From Vitrella brassicaformis CCMP3155 (Eukaryota > Protista > Chromerida): 37,613 bases of DNA. The stretch spans positions 1 through 37,613 of the forward strand of contig CDMY01000641.1 of assembly GCA_001179505.1 (NCBI GenBank), in the 5' to 3' direction. Positions within the stretch are counted from its first letter, which is position 1, and each line of letters opens with the position of its first letter. Shown here piece by piece: positions 1-7,998 of the stretch. Below the pieces are notes generated by a model. The model had not been told where the DNA came from, did no database searches, and saw only the letters and a list, made by a program, of their open reading frames with translations. The translations under genes and the position numbers were made by a program.

Positions 1-52
1 GTGCATGCATTCTGCATGTGCCTGTTGCCTGTTTGGTGTGTGCTGTGGACAG

Positions 53-713
53 AGAAGATGCCTGGTTGCGCCGGAAGGTAGCGCCGGGCTTAGGGACAGG
101 TGTCTCGTCAAACCCTTAACCAACCAACCAACCCCTCCCCCCCTTTCACAACGTTCACGAATTTCGAGGACGAATTTCAGGAAACCGGTAGCGCCATCGT
201 GTCATTCACTCGGATGACGCTCCCTCATCGTTCGTCTTCTGCCCTTGTACAAGTCCTGCAGGTACGCTCGTTCATGCATGAAGACACGATGGCTATTGTT
301 TGGACGGACTGGTGTCTGTGTGTCTGTGTTTGTGTGTGCACACAGGCTTCCTGAGTTTGTACGATGCGGCGCAGTCACGGCATATACAATCCAATCCACC
401 ACAACACCCTCACATTCATTGGCTGACCTGCCCGTGTGTGTGGGTGCGTTCATGTGCAGACAGGATGGGGCGACCATCGGCCGACGACTCGGGAGAGAAC
501 GGCGAGCGGATGGAGGCCGACACCGGTGCGGACGGGGACAGGGAGAGGGAAGGGGCTGGCAACGCACATGTGCGCGCGTCCGTCGTGGGGGACGGTCATG
601 GTGACGGTGATGGAGGCGTCATGGGGCGGGTGGGCAGGGGCGAGAGCGAGGATCACAGGGGTGGAAGGAGGAGGGGACTTGGACACCTGTCGAGCCGCCC
701 CATGCAGACCTAA
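53..713 (+). CDS. 3' part of an unknown multi-exon gene entering from the left edge
   Basis: AG/GT-bounded candidate exons near 53-99, 181-260 (ETGSAIVSFTRMTLPHRSSSALVQVLQ|gtacgc) and a Gly/Asp/Glu-rich last exon ending TAA at 713. No family recognised. Confidence 0.35.
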
Positions 714-1098
714 CGAGGTATGTATGTGACGGGCACATGCACACACACCGCAGCCACAAAACCCACTCAATCACTCAGTCAATCGCCCCAATCCATCACT
801 CCTTCCCGATGGTGTTTGTGATGGTGTGTGTGAGTGCAGGTTGATTGTTACTTTGCGATTGGTGGGGCGACAGTCAGTACAGCGAGTGGAAGGTTGTGGG
901 CAGCTGCTGCTTCCGCCTCATGTACATGTGTGTGTGTTGTGCGAGATGTGTGTGTAAAGCGGTTAATAGACATAAAGCAAGGCATCCAAATGGACACATG
1001 TGCGTCTTTGTTCATTCATTCACGTGGTGAGAGTCACTGAAATGTAACTGCCACCCCTGAGCAGGACCGATAGAAGCTCATCCAAACGGCCTTGAAGT

Positions 1099-1398
1099 NN
1101 NNNNNNNNNNNNNNNNNNNNNNNNNNNNNNNNNNNNNNNNNNNNNNNNNNNNNNNNNNNNNNNNNNNNNNNNNNNNNNNNNNNNNNNNNNNNNNNNNNNN
1201 NNNNNNNNNNNNNNNNNNNNNNNNNNNNNNNNNNNNNNNNNNNNNNNNNNNNNNNNNNNNNNNNNNNNNNNNNNNNNNNNNNNNNNNNNNNNNNNNNNNN
1301 NNNNNNNNNNNNNNNNNNNNNNNNNNNNNNNNNNNNNNNNNNNNNNNNNNNNNNNNNNNNNNNNNNNNNNNNNNNNNNNNNNNNNNNNNNNNNNNNNN
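1099..1398. other. Assembly gap (300 N) followed by a poly-C run
   Basis: Direct reading of the sequence. Confidence 0.99.
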
Positions 1399-1512
1399 CC
1401 CCCCCCCCCCCCCCCCCTTCTCTTCATCACCGTACCCCCACACAAACGCGCCCGCCCCACCCCCCGAGGCAACAGCAATCATGGACAGTATCGTTAGCAC
1501 GACACCGGGAAC

Positions 1513-2003
1513 CTCCACGGTGAAGGCGAGGCTGAGGGTAAGGAGCAACAGAAGGCCGCATGGCACGGCGCACGCCAGTCCCCATGGACGCCAGGGCTTT
1601 GCCTGACAATGGTCAAGAAAACAGCGTCGCACACTACATCCTCTCCTCTTCTCTTGTCTGTGCGCTGCGGTACCATTGCATGGTACCGCTCGATCTTGAG
1701 GTTGTATTCCGTCAGCGCCGACACAGCCGTCTTCACGTATCGGGTGAATCTCGTCTGGTCTTGCTGGAGTTGGAAGTAGAGCTCGCCGCCTGAGGCGGGT
1801 GAGCGCTGTATGAGCGCTCTCATCGCTCTGAGGGTTGGGAGAGAGAGCTGAGAGCCAAACAGCGTGGAGGCGGGGTTCGTCCTCTTCGCTACGGTTGACA
1901 CCTCACCGGCCAGTCGCAACCTCTCCCCTCTTCCGCACATCCTTGCACGCTGAGGCTTTCCTTGCGAGCTTGAAATCGCAAGAATCGCCTCTTCCCCCGC
2001 CAT
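1513..2003 (-). CDS. Hypothetical membrane protein; 3' end probably runs into the gap
   Basis: ATG 2003; exon 2003-1674 (110 codons, MAGEEAILAISS...NLKIERYHAM|gtaccg); phase-0 acceptor at 1602 gives AKPWRPWGLACAVPCGLLLLLTLSLAFTVE, a hydrophobic segment. Confidence 0.45.
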
Positions 2004-2140
2004 GCTTGGTGAGCCGCAGACCTTCCTCACTGAGCCTTCTCCATCCTTTTCTCTGCCTGATCTGCGCAGAATGGCGAGATCTTGCTTGTGGATGCGGTCA
2101 CTCGGTTGAGCCTTGTCTTCTCACGACGCGGACTGTGGAG

Positions 2141-2769
2141 ATGACCACAGGCGGCAGCACGTCCGAGCCTCGACAACAGAAGAACATATGGCGACGAATG
2201 GTGACAAAGAGCACGAATCAACAGCGCTCTTCATTCTCCCTCTGTCTGTGTGTCCATTGTGTGCCCTGCATTTCACTGCAGATGCGTAGCAAGCCATCGC
2301 ATCTCATCCGCGAGGAGCTCCATCTTGACGCTGATGAGCCACCCTCTCACCAACTGCCCGTCAGCGCGCCACTCCCACCAGAATCACCGGTCGAGCTGCG
2401 CAAGTGCATCACCTTTGCCGACCTCGTGCTCTTCGGCATCGGGGCCACTGTCGGTACCTCGACAGCCACAAACACGACAAGAAGAGGAAGACGATCATAG
2501 CAGATGCGGGCGTCGGTCTGATTGCCCGCTTGCTGCAGGTGCGGGAATCTTTGTGGTGACTGGCGAGGGCGGCCGCATGGCTGGGCCGGGCCTCGTCTTG
2601 TCGTTTGTGACGGCCTGCGGCGGCTGCCTGCTGTCGGCGCTCGCCTACGCCGAGTTCGCCAGCGACATTCCCAGCGCGGGATCGGCCTACACGTTCGTCT
2701 ACAGCAGCCTCGGGGAGCTGTTTGCCTTCCTCAACGGTCTCTTTCTCGTCATGGAGTACGGCCTCTCTG
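2141..2769 (+). pseudogene. APC-superfamily cationic amino-acid permease (CAT-like), N-terminal part only
   Basis: Exons 2141-2200, 2282-2453, 2539-2769 join in frame: LRKCITFADLVLFGIGATVG|AGIFVVTG...AGPGLVLSF...LSALAYAEFASDIPSAGSAYTFVYSSLGELFAFLNG...EYG, the typical CAT N-terminal motifs. No further permease exons found. Confidence 0.75.
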
Positions 2770-3579
2770 GTAGAGATGAACACACTCATTGATTGGGGCG
2801 AGAAGAATCAATCGTGGAGGGAGTGCATGTGCAGCACAGCTGTGTGTGTGGGCTTTTTCGTCCATATATTATGTATGTGACGTGAGGGCGATATGGATGC
2901 ATGAACGACAAGCGACACTTTTATTATCCCAATCTCTCCATTCCCTCACACACACACACACACACACACACACCAAAAGACTCCATTGTCACCACCCCAC
3001 ACACATACACACAGCCGTCACGCGTCATGCCCACGCATCAAACTCATGTTTCCATCTTGATGTCCGTCCATTCCCCACCAGCCCACCCACTCGAGACACA
3101 CGCACACACACACACACACACACACGACGCAAAAACTCAGCCACTCTCCCTCCCTCATGGCATCCCGGCACACACACGAACACACACAGAGTCAAAAATC
3201 TCTCATCCCTCAGCCTATCCAATCAACCGCCAGGCAGCGACATACACATCAAGAAAGAAGGACAAGGAAGGAGGGGCACGTGCGATGGATGGTGCGCTCG
3301 GCCGAGACGAAAAATGGAGGGACCATGTGCCGTATGTCATGTCAGCACATGGAAGGAGCGCTCAGGACAGAAAGGTCGAGACGCGCCCATTCGTTCTCTC
3401 ATCGCACACATACCAACCAGACACCAACGAAGCGTTAGGCTAGTCACTGAACGTGAACCATTGCAAGAAGCACACCCACCCGGGACACGCACCCACACAA
3501 CTAACTGCAAAATCGATACATGCATAGGATAAAAACACCCCCAGGCCTGCCCCAACGATCCCTCCCGTCACTCCCTCCC

Positions 3580-5340
3580 TCACCCTGCCGCAGCAGTGGC
3601 TCTCTCACCGTCGCCGCCCCCAATCGACCCGTGACGAATTCGCATCATCCTGTCCACCGTCACAGCCACCTCCCCGTCATCCCCACCCCCATGGCCACCG
3701 CCCTCATGGCCATGCAGGGCCAGCGATGACTCCTGCTGGCCGCCCTCACCAAACTGGAAATCGACCGCAAAACCCTCCTGCAGCCTCTCCTCCTTCCTGC
3801 CGGGCTCCTCTGCCGCTTGCTCTCGTCCTCTGCCCAGGAGTGCGTCCTTCTGCTCATCACTGAGGATCCGCAATGTCCCTGGCTCGCTCATCTCCTCGTC
3901 AGCCAGCGTCAGCGGCCCTATCGCAACCCTCTCGAGGGCCCTGACGTCCACACCGATGCCCTCAAACAGAATCCGCACTATGTAGCCCGCCCGGTCGCTG
4001 TCGAACCCATTCACCCGCACCAAGGGTGAGGATCGCGAGCAGTGGGATGGGTGGGCGAAGCGGCCAAGCCGTGCTGAGGCGACTTCGTGGTTGGGGATGA
4101 GGGAGTCGCGACCGCCTGTGTCGCCCTGCCACGCCTGTGAGACGGGCCACGGCTCTGCTGGAGGGGAGGGGGAGGGGGAGGTGGAGGTAGGGGCGGGGTC
4201 GTCCTGTTGCGTCTCGTCAGACGGCCACCACACCTCTGCTGCCGTCTTGACCGGCGGCCTGCATACACACAGCCGCACAGCACAGAGAGACAGAGAGAGA
4301 GAGCATCACCAGACTGACCAACGATTTAGCTTCCTTCTTGTTCGTTCACCTCACCTGGTGGGTTGGTCCGCCCATAAGAGCTTCACGCCATCCTTGAGTC
4401 GCTTCGCCTGTGCGTAGGTCATGGGCTGCTTCGGTGTCACCCGCCACCAGAAGGGCACCGAGCAGGGAGGGGAGGACGGCAGTGAGGGCGTTGCTGTGTG
4501 GCCATCAGTCGGTCCAAAGTCCGCCGCCCGCACGTGTTCGTCGAGGTGTCGCCGCTTGAAGTCGCGCACAAACGGGTTGTGCGCTGGGCTGGCGGGTGCC
4601 TCGGGCGAGGGGCCCTCCAGCACCGACTGCAGCTTCTTGTCATTGCTGATGGATGGATGTGCACACACATCAATCACAACATCAGCAGAGGAGAGGTGAT
4701 CGATCCAATGCGTGTGTGTGTGTGTGTGTGTCTGTGTACGCCTCACTCACCTGAGCAGCATCAGCCCCGAGGCGGCTGGTCCGAGTCTGCACACGGGGTG
4801 GACGTGGAGGAAGGGCGAGGGGAGGAGGTCGCGGATGGAGGGCCGCCGCATGAAGTCGACGTTGTGGCAGACGTAGCCCTGGGGCTTGTGCAGGATGAAA
4901 GTCACGTTCCGCAGCATGTCGAGAGGGTACCCCTGCAGGCTGATGGCGTCCTACATCAACCACACCACACCACACCGCGGTCAGCATACAGACAGTCAGG
5001 TCTACAACACATATGAAGATGTGTCTGTCTGGGATCTCCTCACCTTCTCGTCGTCTATCCATTTGTTCTGGTACACAATGCTGCAGCGCAAAAGCACACG
5101 AAGTGCCACACAGCGAGATTGATGCGTCATGTCACTCTCTAGACGGCACCCACCCAGTGAGTGCCTACTTGCGATTGACGGCGACTTTGCCCTTGTGCAG
5201 GAGGTAAGTGGCTTCCTCTCTGCCGCAGACGCCAGACTTGACCAGGACAGTCTCCAGCAGCCGAGCTGTGCGGAGGATGGACGTCAGGTGCATGGGCAGC
5301 CGGAAGGGAGCCTTGTCGGTGGGGAAACGGTGAAGTCGGG
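3580..5340 (-). CDS. S4-domain RsuA/RluB/E/F-family pseudouridine synthase-like protein, catalytic Asp replaced
   Basis: S4-like exon 5340-5169 (LLETVLVKSGVCGREEATYLLHKGKVAVN); exon 4950-4751 (FILHKPQGYVC...HPVCRLGPAASGLMLLS|ND); exon 4645-4355 (AKRLKDGVKL); last exon from 4258 (IVRILFEGIGVDVRALERVAIGPLTL). True start and stop uncertain. Confidence 0.8.
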
Positions 5341-5536
5341 CTGCGGATAACTCACAGCTATGTTCTATTCACTCGCACAAGGTTTTGTAGAGTTCAGGGT
5401 TAGGCTCGCATTGGTGAGGAGGGAAACAGGCGAAGGTTGTGTGAGCCAAGAGCAACAGTGGCGTACCTCTACACACAACCTGAACCCTGAACCGGGGTCG
5501 TAGCGGCCGTGCTGTTCGGTGCGGCTTTTTTGCGGG

Positions 5537-6756
5537 ATGGCGGGTCAGGACGAATATGACCACCTATACAAGAGTAAGCGACGCAGGAAGGCAGAGAGGG
5601 CGCACCACACACTGCAGGCCAGATCCCCTTCATCTTATCACTCAGACAACACATGTCTGCGCACTGATGGTATTCCCTCTCTGTGTGTGTGCTGTGTGTG
5701 GTGTGTTTGCCACTGCATAGTCATATTGGTAGGCGATGCGACTGTAGGCAAGACGCATCTGTTGTCGCGGTACATCAAGGGCACACTGCCCAAGGCGCCC
5801 ACAGCCACCATAGGGGTCGAGTTCGCCACCAGGACAGTCCCGCTGGCCGTCGGGGGGACGGTCAAGGCCCAGATATGGGACACTGGTCAGTGAGTGGGGT
5901 CAGTGACACAGACAGACAGACAGACAGACAGGCGCACCCGGCGACCCTTTCCGTGTGCCTGTGGTTGTTGTCCATGGCAATGCGTTCATTGGTGTGTCTG
6001 TTCATCTGTTTCTCTGTTCCTCTGTTCGTTCAGCTGGTCAGGAGCGTTATCGTGCGATAACGAGTGCGCACTACCGCCGTGCGGTGGGTGCGCTGCTGGT
6101 GTATGACGTGACCAAGGCGCAGACCTTCCAGAACTGCACCAAGTGGCTCGAGGACCTGCGCAACAACGCCGAGCCAGACATTGTCGTCATGGTGGTCGGC
6201 AACAAGGTCGACCTCGTCGAGAAGGACCCATCGCTCAGGCAAGTTCCATTCGAACAGGCGCAGGCGTGGGCGCAATCCAAAAGTAAGCACACTGACGCGA
6301 GAAGGTCGAGAAGGGACGGCATGCTGAGCGTGTGTGTGTGTGTGTGTTAGGTTTAATGTTTTACGAGAGTTCTGCTGTGACGTCGTTCAACGTCAAACAC
6401 ATTTTCGAGGACCTCCTGCAGGGTCAGTGAGGCGGCGAGGGCAGGGCATATCGATACGAGGACCGATCTGGTTTAACTTCTGTGTGTTGTGTTGTGAATC
6501 GTCCGACCAGAGATCTACACTCAGAGGACCAAGGTCAAGTCTGACCGGTATAACGACAACTCAACACAAGGTACCGAAGGTACGACACACACACAGACAG
6601 ACTGACAGACTGACAGACAGGCAGATCGTCGGAGCCGCACTTTTCGATGGTTCCATCTTTCCTCTCTGGTGCCTGCCTGCCTCCGTCCGTGTGTGTGCAG
6701 GTGGCATGCAGCTCCGGCACAACCCCCCGCAACGGCAAGCCGGCTGTTGCACATAA
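5537..6756 (+). CDS. RAB11B: Rab11B small GTPase (alveolate-type)
   Basis: Six exons 5537-5573, 5721-5885, 6034-6282, 6351-6422, 6511-6579, 6701-6756 join in frame: GDATVGKT P-loop, [42 protein letters not shown]-terminal GCCT prenylation motif. Confidence 0.95.
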
Positions 6757-7194
6757 TTCGCACCTGTAATTCGGGCACTGCAGCCGATACGATACACACA
6801 TGTAAGTATATATGTCAGAGGGAGGGCACCTCTCACAGCACATTGCCGCACGACGACACATACCTATCGATACGAATCGTTGTTTCGTTTCTGATCCTTG
6901 TTTTGTCTGTCAGGCTGTCGCGCGTGCAGGGCGATTTTGTGAGCACGATCTTCGCTCCCTCTCTGGCTCTCCTGCCTTCCCCTCTCCCACCGCTGCCTGC
7001 CTGCCTGCCTGTCTGTCTGTCTGCCTCTGGTCCATCCATCCATCTCTATCTAGCGCTGCTATGCTCTCTTGGCTGGCTGATGTACAGAACCGACGAATGG
7101 GCGCGGATATGGGCGGGCGGGGGCTGGCTGCATCGGCATGCACATGGATCCATTCATTGAGCTGAGGGCGGGGTGGGGCGGGGCGGGGGGGGGG

Positions 7195-7494
7195 NNNNNN
7201 NNNNNNNNNNNNNNNNNNNNNNNNNNNNNNNNNNNNNNNNNNNNNNNNNNNNNNNNNNNNNNNNNNNNNNNNNNNNNNNNNNNNNNNNNNNNNNNNNNNN
7301 NNNNNNNNNNNNNNNNNNNNNNNNNNNNNNNNNNNNNNNNNNNNNNNNNNNNNNNNNNNNNNNNNNNNNNNNNNNNNNNNNNNNNNNNNNNNNNNNNNNN
7401 NNNNNNNNNNNNNNNNNNNNNNNNNNNNNNNNNNNNNNNNNNNNNNNNNNNNNNNNNNNNNNNNNNNNNNNNNNNNNNNNNNNNNNNNNNNNNN
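7195..7494. other. Assembly gap (300 N) flanked by G-rich runs
   Basis: Direct reading of the sequence. Confidence 0.99.
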
Positions 7495-7998
7495 GGGGTG
7501 GGATGGGATGGGGCTGCAGCATACATACATACGATCGACAGTTGGGTTGGGGCGTACACTTACTTGCGTACATTTTGCATACTCCTATCTATCTATTACA
7601 TCTGCAGGCCGCACCTCTGGCTGGCAGGGTGCGTGCGACATTGGTGCATTGGTTCATTCAGTGGTTCATTTCCTGCTTACCAGTGGTTGCTTGCTGTAGT
7701 TAGATTGATGGTCCATCCATACTGATATGATGAATGCTGCTGCTGCGCGTAGACGTGGCCTGTCCATGAGAGCAGAGCATGGGATGTGATGTGTGCCTGT
7801 CTGTCTTGTGTGCGTGGCTGCGTTTTGTTCCTTCCGTGTGATCCATCCGATCGACTCAGTGAATGAGATGAATGATGAACCCATGTGTGTCGCCTGCCTA
7901 CAGCGATGAGGCACTGACACTCTGACTGACGATCCCTTGATTGATGAGATATATGATTAATCGTCATTTCCATGACTCGTTTGCCGTCACTCTAAGTA

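Follow-up and report, generated by a model that had tools for sequence, protein, structure and literature searches.

All six families of pseudouridine synthases require an aspartate (Asp) residue (PMC8910892; PMC12710931), and synthase paralogues that bind RNA without it are an established kind of protein, as follows from the cases described in human, plants and T. brucei. Human RPUSD3, in which HRLD is replaced by RASG, is regarded as a pseudoenzyme and is needed for the pseudouridylation of mitochondrial rRNA and mRNA and for ribosome biogenesis (10.1101/2023.02.23.529727; PMC12710931). In plants, HRLG-type RluA variants are conserved from algae to seed plants, and in Arabidopsis an Asp mutant of SVR1, a member of the RsuA family, rescues the chloroplast rRNA-processing mutant (PMC8910892). 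The synthase homologue mt-LAF3 of T. brucei binds rRNA and serves as a scaffold when the mitoribosome is assembled; its D211A variant complements the null (10.1101/2023.02.23.529727). The natural Asp-less cases described so far (RPUSD3 and the plant HRLG proteins) are of the RluA type. Here we report an Asp-less synthase paralogue of the RsuA type, expressed and constrained, from a chromerid, Vitrella brassicaformis CCMP3155, encoded on contig CDMY01000641.1 of assembly GCA_001179505.1, of which positions 1 to 37,613 of the forward strand, a stretch of 37,613 nucleotides referred to as the window, were analysed.

The gene lies at 5293..3580 on the minus strand; in translation of that strand it consists of five exons with about 443 codons, all introns being of the GT..AG type, and in the encoded product an S4 RNA-binding domain precedes a pseudouridine synthase core of the RsuA/RluB type. 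Judging from the sequence comparisons described below, it is probably a maintained, non-catalytic RNA-binding paralogue derived from RsuA, acting as a chaperone or scaffold. The catalytic Asp is lost, the gene is transcribed, spliced and under purifying selection, and it belongs to a clade in which the Asp has been lost repeatedly. Because the gene is expressed, correctly spliced and under purifying selection, the window protein is a pseudo-enzyme, as a previous sequence-only reading of this DNA had proposed, and its gene is not a pseudogene. The effect of this finding on the field is modest, the principle being already established: pseudouridine synthases are a textbook case in which a non-catalytic RNA chaperone role can outlive the chemistry. 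In practice, it guards against annotating the window protein as an rRNA pseudouridine synthase.

Catalytic motif and domain order

The 57th codon of exon 3, GGA at 4782-4780 on the minus strand, encodes Gly in place of the catalytic Asp, giving CRLG for GRLD in motif II. In a phmmer search against the PDB, 'VCRLGPAASGLML' was aligned to 'AGRLDIDTTGLVL' of E. coli RsuA (1KSK; E 0.0095), an alignment that sets the Gly on the catalytic Asp102 of RsuA, and a profile of four enzymes (RsuA, RluB, RluE and RluF) gave the same register for exon 3 (E 2e-9). The replacement, already named in the sequence-only reading, is borne out by both alignments. Of the 14 columns that are invariant or nearly so in an alignment of exon 3 with 29 homologues, only two are changed in the window, G54 (to Cys) and D57 (to Gly), both of which fall within the catalytic motif; the invariant columns K22, P23 and G25 are kept. 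Further changes are seen downstream. The segment 'PFWWRVT' of exon 4 stands opposite 'EKTYLVT' of RsuA in a weak alignment (E 0.15; profile E 0.16), by which Lys is replaced by Phe and Trp appears to take the place of the active-site Tyr of KxY, the residue that stacks. For motif III, the window has DRAGYIVRIL where EGRNRQVRRM is expected, with 'DRAGYI' in the place of 'EGRNRQ', the first Arg of the pair kept and the second replaced by Ile.

The retention of motif I, the motif II Arg, part of motif III and the S4 domain, together with the presence of the Asp in most dinoflagellate relatives, would be compatible with a still active synthase using another acidic residue or a residue of a partner protein. 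We consider such an enzyme very unlikely, however, since the Asp is required universally in all six synthase families (PMC8910892; PMC12710931), no Asp or Glu occurs between H49 and L66 of exon 3, and the motif Gly and both the Tyr and the Lys of KxY are changed too.

Compared with RsuA, RluB, RluE and RluF of E. coli (1KSK, 4LAB, 2OML and 3DH3), the window protein appears to share the order of S4 domain, motif I (HKPxG), motif II, KxYxV region, motif III and the L.R..IG..L strand, but it has Gly for Asp, Cys for the motif Gly and apparently Trp for the KxY Tyr, and of the 'RR' in motif III it has lost the second Arg. It is also longer, owing to two inserts (about 45 and about 60 residues) and to a tail of some 85 residues, and it is encoded by a eukaryotic gene with introns. 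The precedent of RPUSD3, invoked in the sequence-only reading, holds in that this protein, too, is a naturally occurring synthase paralogue in which Gly occupies the position of the catalytic Asp, and is regarded as a pseudoenzyme (10.1101/2023.02.23.529727; PMC12710931); unlike the window protein, it belongs to the RluA family and is a mitochondrial protein of animals. The plant HRLG-type proteins show the same Asp-to-Gly change but are RluA-type, whereas SVR1 is of the RsuA family like the window protein but keeps GRLD and has a chloroplast transit peptide. In the mitochondrial mt-LAF3, which is RluA-type, the Asp is kept without the Arg (HNLD), in contrast to the RsuA-type window protein with its CRLG.

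The family assignment is based on searches with single exons, as are all profiles, trees and substitution counts reported here; our own profile was built from E. coli RsuA, RluB, RluE and RluF of the K-12 record, and the exon search was made with filters off. Pfam detected S4 on exon 1 (E 0.005) and PseudoU_synth_2 (PF00849) on exon 3 (E 4.8e-4), and NCBIfam gave TIGR00093 (E 7.6e-5) and the RsuA equivalog (E 2.3e-4) on exon 3, no family model reaching its gathering score on single exons; the S4 match falls below it because the domain is spread over exons. An N-terminal S4 domain is typical of RsuA, RluB and RluF, RluE alone being without it. On our profile, exon 1 matched positions 3-30 (E 0.0015), exon 3 positions 66-115 (E 2e-9), exon 4 positions 138-159 (E 0.16) and exon 5, with the C-terminal strand and 'VRIL', positions 190-229 (E 7e-5), and since these matches are colinear, the RsuA domain order is complete in the window gene, interrupted by the low-complexity inserts of about 45 and 60 residues and followed by the tail. 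The S4 domain and the C-terminal motif, both described earlier as intact, are thus recovered, the former weakly but correctly by Pfam and by our profile, the latter through the exon 5 segment 'VRILFEGIGVDVRALERVAIGPLTL...', which gives the match at 190-229.

A BLASTP match of exon 4 to RsuA residues 122-154 (E 0.15) is weak but colinear, and exon 5 matched the C-terminus of a dinoflagellate relative (P0003; BLASTP, E 1e-4). A profile of the dinoflagellate proteins together with the window exons aligned with E. coli RsuA (1KSK) over residues 6-233 (E 5e-20). The best matches were RsuA, RluB and RluF, RluA being far weaker (TIGR00005, E 0.044, versus 7.6e-5 for the RsuA-type model); judged from these scores, the window protein is not an orthologue of the RluA-type pseudoenzymes, but would work like them. 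In the PDB search exon 4 had no match, and a match of the conserved part of exon 5 was dismissed as a chance match to a DARPin repeat. A feature search of the ESM Atlas with exon 3 retrieved only generic PF00849 fragments.

Transcription, splicing and selection

Contigs of four public runs (X2, X10, X11 and X12, from three studies) were placed on positions 3300-5600. Rare variants and expression levels are beyond the scope of such contigs, which come without raw reads, and the RNA nature of the runs is deduced from their splicing. Contigs of all four runs cover 4751-4839, and none has a letter other than GGA at 4780-4782. Two of them are spliced and read GGA, namely X11 record 9, which joins 5397-5169, 5080-5043, 4949-4751 and 4645-4585, and X10 record 3, which joins 4839-4751, 4645-4354 and 4257-4203. 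The codon is also unchanged in X2, which is unspliced and carries another organism label, and in X12, a marine sediment metagenome containing a variant lineage with single-nucleotide polymorphisms elsewhere. An environmental contig, L001, has the codons TGC AGA CTC GGA, identical to those of the window. A sequencing or assembly error at GGA, or RNA editing back to an Asp codon, is refuted at the level of contigs, since the four runs, which come from three studies and include two with spliced contigs, agree on GGA with the independent L001; nothing was seen in favour of an error or of editing, and either deserves next to no credence.

All features of the gene lie on the minus strand. The 5' untranslated region (UTR) extends at least over 5294..5397, X11 record 9 being continuous over 5169-5397. 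Exon 1 (5169..5293) starts with the ATG at 5293-5291 and encodes the first part of the S4 domain, as detected by Pfam and our profile; intron 1 (5081..5168, 88 nt, GT..AG) is skipped by the joint 5080->5169 in X10 and X11. The end of the S4 domain is encoded by exon 2 (5044..5080, 37 nt), which is present as piece 5043-5080 in X11 record 9 and is identical in sequence between the window and L001, and intron 2 (4951..5043, 93 nt, GT..AG) is removed by the joint 4949->5043 (cut +1) in X10 and X11. Exon 3 (4751..4950; PF00849, TIGR00093 and the alignment with RsuA 1KSK), whose translation is DAISLQGYPLDMLRNVTFILHKPQGYVCHNVDFMRRPSIRDLLPSPFLHVHPVCRLGPAASGLMLL and includes ...FILHKPQGYVCHNVDFMRRPSIRDLLPSPFLHVHPVCRLGPAASGLMLL, contains motif I (HKPQGYVC) as well as motif II in its degenerate form (CRLG) with the GGA codon (4780..4782), supported by the alignments, the run contigs and L001 as Gly replacing D102 of RsuA. 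Across intron 3 (4646..4750, 105 nt, GT..AG, containing an (AC)n run), X10 record 3 and X11 record 9 pass without a gap from 4645 to 4751.

Exon 4 (4355..4645) contains, by weak colinear matches, 'SNDKKL' (for TNDGxL), the insert of about 45 residues and 'PFWWRVT...LKDGVKL' (the KxYxV...GV.L region), and is followed by intron 4 (4259..4354, 96 nt, GT..AG), which is removed by the joint 4257->4354 (cut +1) in X10. Exon 5 (3580..4258) encodes, besides the low-complexity insert (about 60 residues), the region of motif III with the C-terminal strand (DRAGYIVRILFEGIGVDVRALERVAIGPLTL...PGTLRILSDEQKDALLG; profile match and BLASTP) and the tail of about 85 residues, and ends with the stop codon TGA at 3582-3580, which is the same in L001. 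The splice sites as placed in the sequence-only reading are exact, and all four introns are removed across the X10 and X11 contigs together; the gene is therefore transcribed.

Microsatellites of the types (AC)n, (CT)n and (GT)n occur in the introns, at 4703-4744, 4262-4303 and 4959-4976; many unrelated run contigs end in these stretches, which are also a site of indels in L001. Within the C-terminal tail, 3558-3700 has no contig from either spliced run, both flanks being covered and no joint reported, and this gap more likely represents low coverage or an assembly break than an intron. An extra intron in the tail was considered and rejected: no joint was seen, the X11 sequence continues past 3749, the candidate donor, and L001 stays in frame to the same TGA.

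A word search with exon 5 yielded only an environmental open reading frame (P0001) that is 89% identical, and no full-length model was found; P0001 is carried by L001, a 2811-bp ENA metagenome contig in which the whole orthologous gene is present, with its start, stop and all splice sites kept. Codons were counted between the window and L001 exon by exon, split codons being left out, and p is from a one-sided binomial test. Over all exons there are 27 synonymous and 32 non-synonymous substitutions (dS 0.086, dN 0.033, dN/dS 0.39, p 5e-4). In the domain-like blocks, the counts are 13 and 8 (dN/dS 0.20, p 4e-4), and in the inserts and tail 14 and 24 (dN/dS 0.56, p 0.075). The exons show a single indel, an in-frame one of 3 nt in the tail, and the four introns 42 mismatches over 361 aligned positions with 29 gap columns. 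Indels between the window and L001 are limited to the introns, the UTR and the C-terminal tail; a 37-nt deletion in L001 directly follows the conserved stop, and large indels occur in the 5' UTR region. The two lineages differ at about 9% of synonymous sites and about 12% of intron positions, and the frame and eight splice sites are intact in both.

The dN/dS ratio, the distribution of indels and the intact frame thus indicate a constrained coding gene and not a pseudogene; purifying selection is measured here on one pair of close lineages with 59 substitutions. Relaxed selection without expression is contradicted by the overall ratio of 0.39 and the spliced contigs. One might still think of a decaying paralogue, a young transcribed pseudogene without function, in view of the degenerate catalytic motif, the two large low-complexity inserts, the fast-evolving tail (dN/dS 0.56) and the lack of any family model at gathering score on a single exon. 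This is unlikely, however, because the frame and eight splice sites are intact in two lineages, the domain blocks have a dN/dS of 0.20 (p 4e-4), indels are confined as described, and spliced transcripts are present.

At the end of L001 (about 2690-2811), the junction between intron 4 and exon 5 of this gene occurs a second time, and after it nearby sequence is repeated in inverted orientation; this part of the contig is probably a chimera that arose in assembly.

Eukaryotic relatives and repeated loss of the aspartate

An exhaustive search with exon 3 returned 53 hits, the best with 44 bits and none of them a self hit, so that the product of this gene appears to be missing from the public protein sets searched. 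The top relatives, with 35-44% identity over exon 3, form a distinct eukaryotic group, including dinoflagellate proteins (Gymnodinium smaydae EP00928_P000965, Effrenium voratum CAJ1415380.1 and Polarella glacialis A0A813GB47, the last named 'RNA-binding S4 domain-containing protein') as well as P0029 (from a contig of run ERR1719235), P0044, P0047, P0098 and P0099. The remaining exon 3 hits are bacterial RluB-type enzymes, e.g., of Armatimonadota. In two profile word searches (A4 and A5), covering up to 8000 candidates each, the matches listed were also mostly bacterial RluB proteins, with no Chromera or apicomplexan member among them. When metagenome contigs of JGI were scanned with exon 3, 597 patterns matched but no relative was confirmed. 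The window and its eukaryotic relatives share the C-terminal sequence '(I/V)A(V/I)GPL(S/T)L...PG..R.L...E.DALL'.

In a tree of the exon 3 region, whose resolution is limited by its 81 columns, the eukaryotic clade including the window was recovered with a support (ultrafast bootstrap/SH-aLRT) of 94/90, the window with P0029 of 93/83, the group of P0044, P0047, P0098 and P0099 of 100/98, and the dinoflagellates of 96/91. These S4-plus-synthase proteins of dinoflagellates and other marine eukaryotes, which are unstudied, are thus the nearest relatives of the window protein and form one clade with it, and motif II is degenerate in several of them. It reads CRLG in the window and L001, AALP in P0029, DIIN in P0098, DLLG in P0099, DIVD in P0044, DRID in P0047, and GRLD, SRID, GRID, GRVD, GPID or GPVD in the dinoflagellates. 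At least three losses of the Asp are required on the tree of the eukaryotic clade (residues G, G, N and P), and the base-flipping Arg of motif II is also missing in several members. Such repeated loss of Asp and Arg is the pattern expected if the selected function of the family is independent of catalysis; it fits a non-catalytic role and speaks against a synthase that is still active by way of another residue. The clade may serve as an evolutionary test of whether binding, and not modification, is the selected function.

A tentative extension of this idea, to which we would give somewhat less than even odds, is that the clade represents an undescribed eukaryotic family derived from RsuA, occurring in dinoflagellates, chromerids and at least one marine eukaryote with a compact genome, whose job would be not catalysis but structural RNA binding, for instance in the ribosome itself or in its assembly. 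If true, structural RNA binding would account for the repeated loss of the catalytic Asp (three times or more) and of the base-flipping Arg; most members of the family would share the 'DTS(P/A)Y' segment described below, and CRLG of Vitrella and AALP of P0029 would share one old loss.

Most of the relatives keep the Asp. At the N-terminus, the relatives have a 'DTS(P/A)Y...' segment as well as long extensions, and the window protein is without both. In the dinoflagellates (P0003, P0055, P0058, P0059 and P0060), the conserved N-terminal sequence is 'RRWDTSPYRxVHxLTWxxLNRARWP...W.P.W', and in P0029, P0044, P0047, P0098 and P0099 it is 'DTSAYMWHTIRxR..LRTETSA..W.P'. The 'DTS' segment matched no Pfam family; it could be a ribosome-binding or import element. 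P0044 is encoded on compact eukaryotic metagenome contigs (L006 1-8457 and L007) with spacers of about 30-45 bp and no introns called, where its neighbours are EMG1, a PPR/zinc-finger protein, peroxiredoxin and Tsr1.

Predicted RNA binding, compartment and surroundings of the gene

The window protein descends from bacterial-type RsuA/RluB pseudouridine synthases consisting of an S4 domain and a synthase core. With Gly in place of the Asp that attacks the target uridine, the formation of pseudouridine would be impossible, and the parts presumed to grip RNA (the S4 domain, motif I, the motif II Arg, the C-terminal strand and part of motif III) appear to be retained, which makes RNA binding without catalysis the most likely mechanism. 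By analogy with SVR1, for which such a role is demonstrated, and with RPUSD3 and mt-LAF3, for which it has been suggested, the protein may act as a chaperone or scaffold for structured RNA, most plausibly for rRNA during subunit assembly; that it binds RNA is inferred, as are its target and the compartment.

Several points weigh against a maintained non-catalytic RNA-binding paralogue. The runs consist of contigs and not of raw reads, with an RNA origin deduced from splicing, and selection is measured on a single pair of lineages. Exons 4 and 5 match nothing in Pfam or NCBIfam, and exon 5 nothing in RsuA by phmmer or BLASTP, its similarity being seen only with the family profile unfiltered. 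A carboxylate from elsewhere in the protein may reach the active site. The matches listed include no orthologue from Chromera, colpodellids or apicomplexans; the term 'conserved', applied to the pseudo-enzyme in the sequence-only reading, is shown to apply only across the Vitrella-level lineages, with P0029 as a possible sister. Finally, the best-studied analogues are organellar, and the N-terminus of the window protein contains no organelle-targeting sequence.

This last point bears on the role in organellar ribosome assembly that was initially assigned to the protein. A factor for the assembly of mitochondrial or plastid ribosomes would have its analogues in SVR1 of chloroplasts (PMC8910892) and in RPUSD3 (PMC12710931) and mt-LAF3 (10.1101/2023.02.23.529727) of mitochondria, and long N-terminal extensions, of 100-190 extra residues, are present in the dinoflagellate relatives. 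In the window, however, the S4 domain starts at about residue 10 of the protein, X11 record 9 is unbroken from exon 1 to 5397 and includes an in-frame TGA 27 codons 5' of the ATG at 5293, and no ATG lies between this TGA and the ATG. With an in-frame stop upstream within the transcript and the S4 domain so close to the start, there is no room for a signal or transit peptide, which is impossible here unless import proceeds by internal signals; moreover, the region 5' of the ATG is full of indels in L001. No component derived from the RsuA family was found in organellar ribosomes among the solved structures searched. An organellar assembly factor is therefore a doubtful form of the non-catalytic RNA-binding paralogue.

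The window holds no paralogue of the synthase-like gene, as examined by tblastn. A gene for a Rab11-like small GTPase, with introns, lies at 5519-6350 on the plus strand, divergent from the synthase-like gene; the two start codons are about 250 bp apart, and at 5397/5408 the RNA contigs of one gene almost meet those of the other. Further along, at about 7190-7510, the window contains a run of N, an assembly gap that appears as X-runs in all reading frames.

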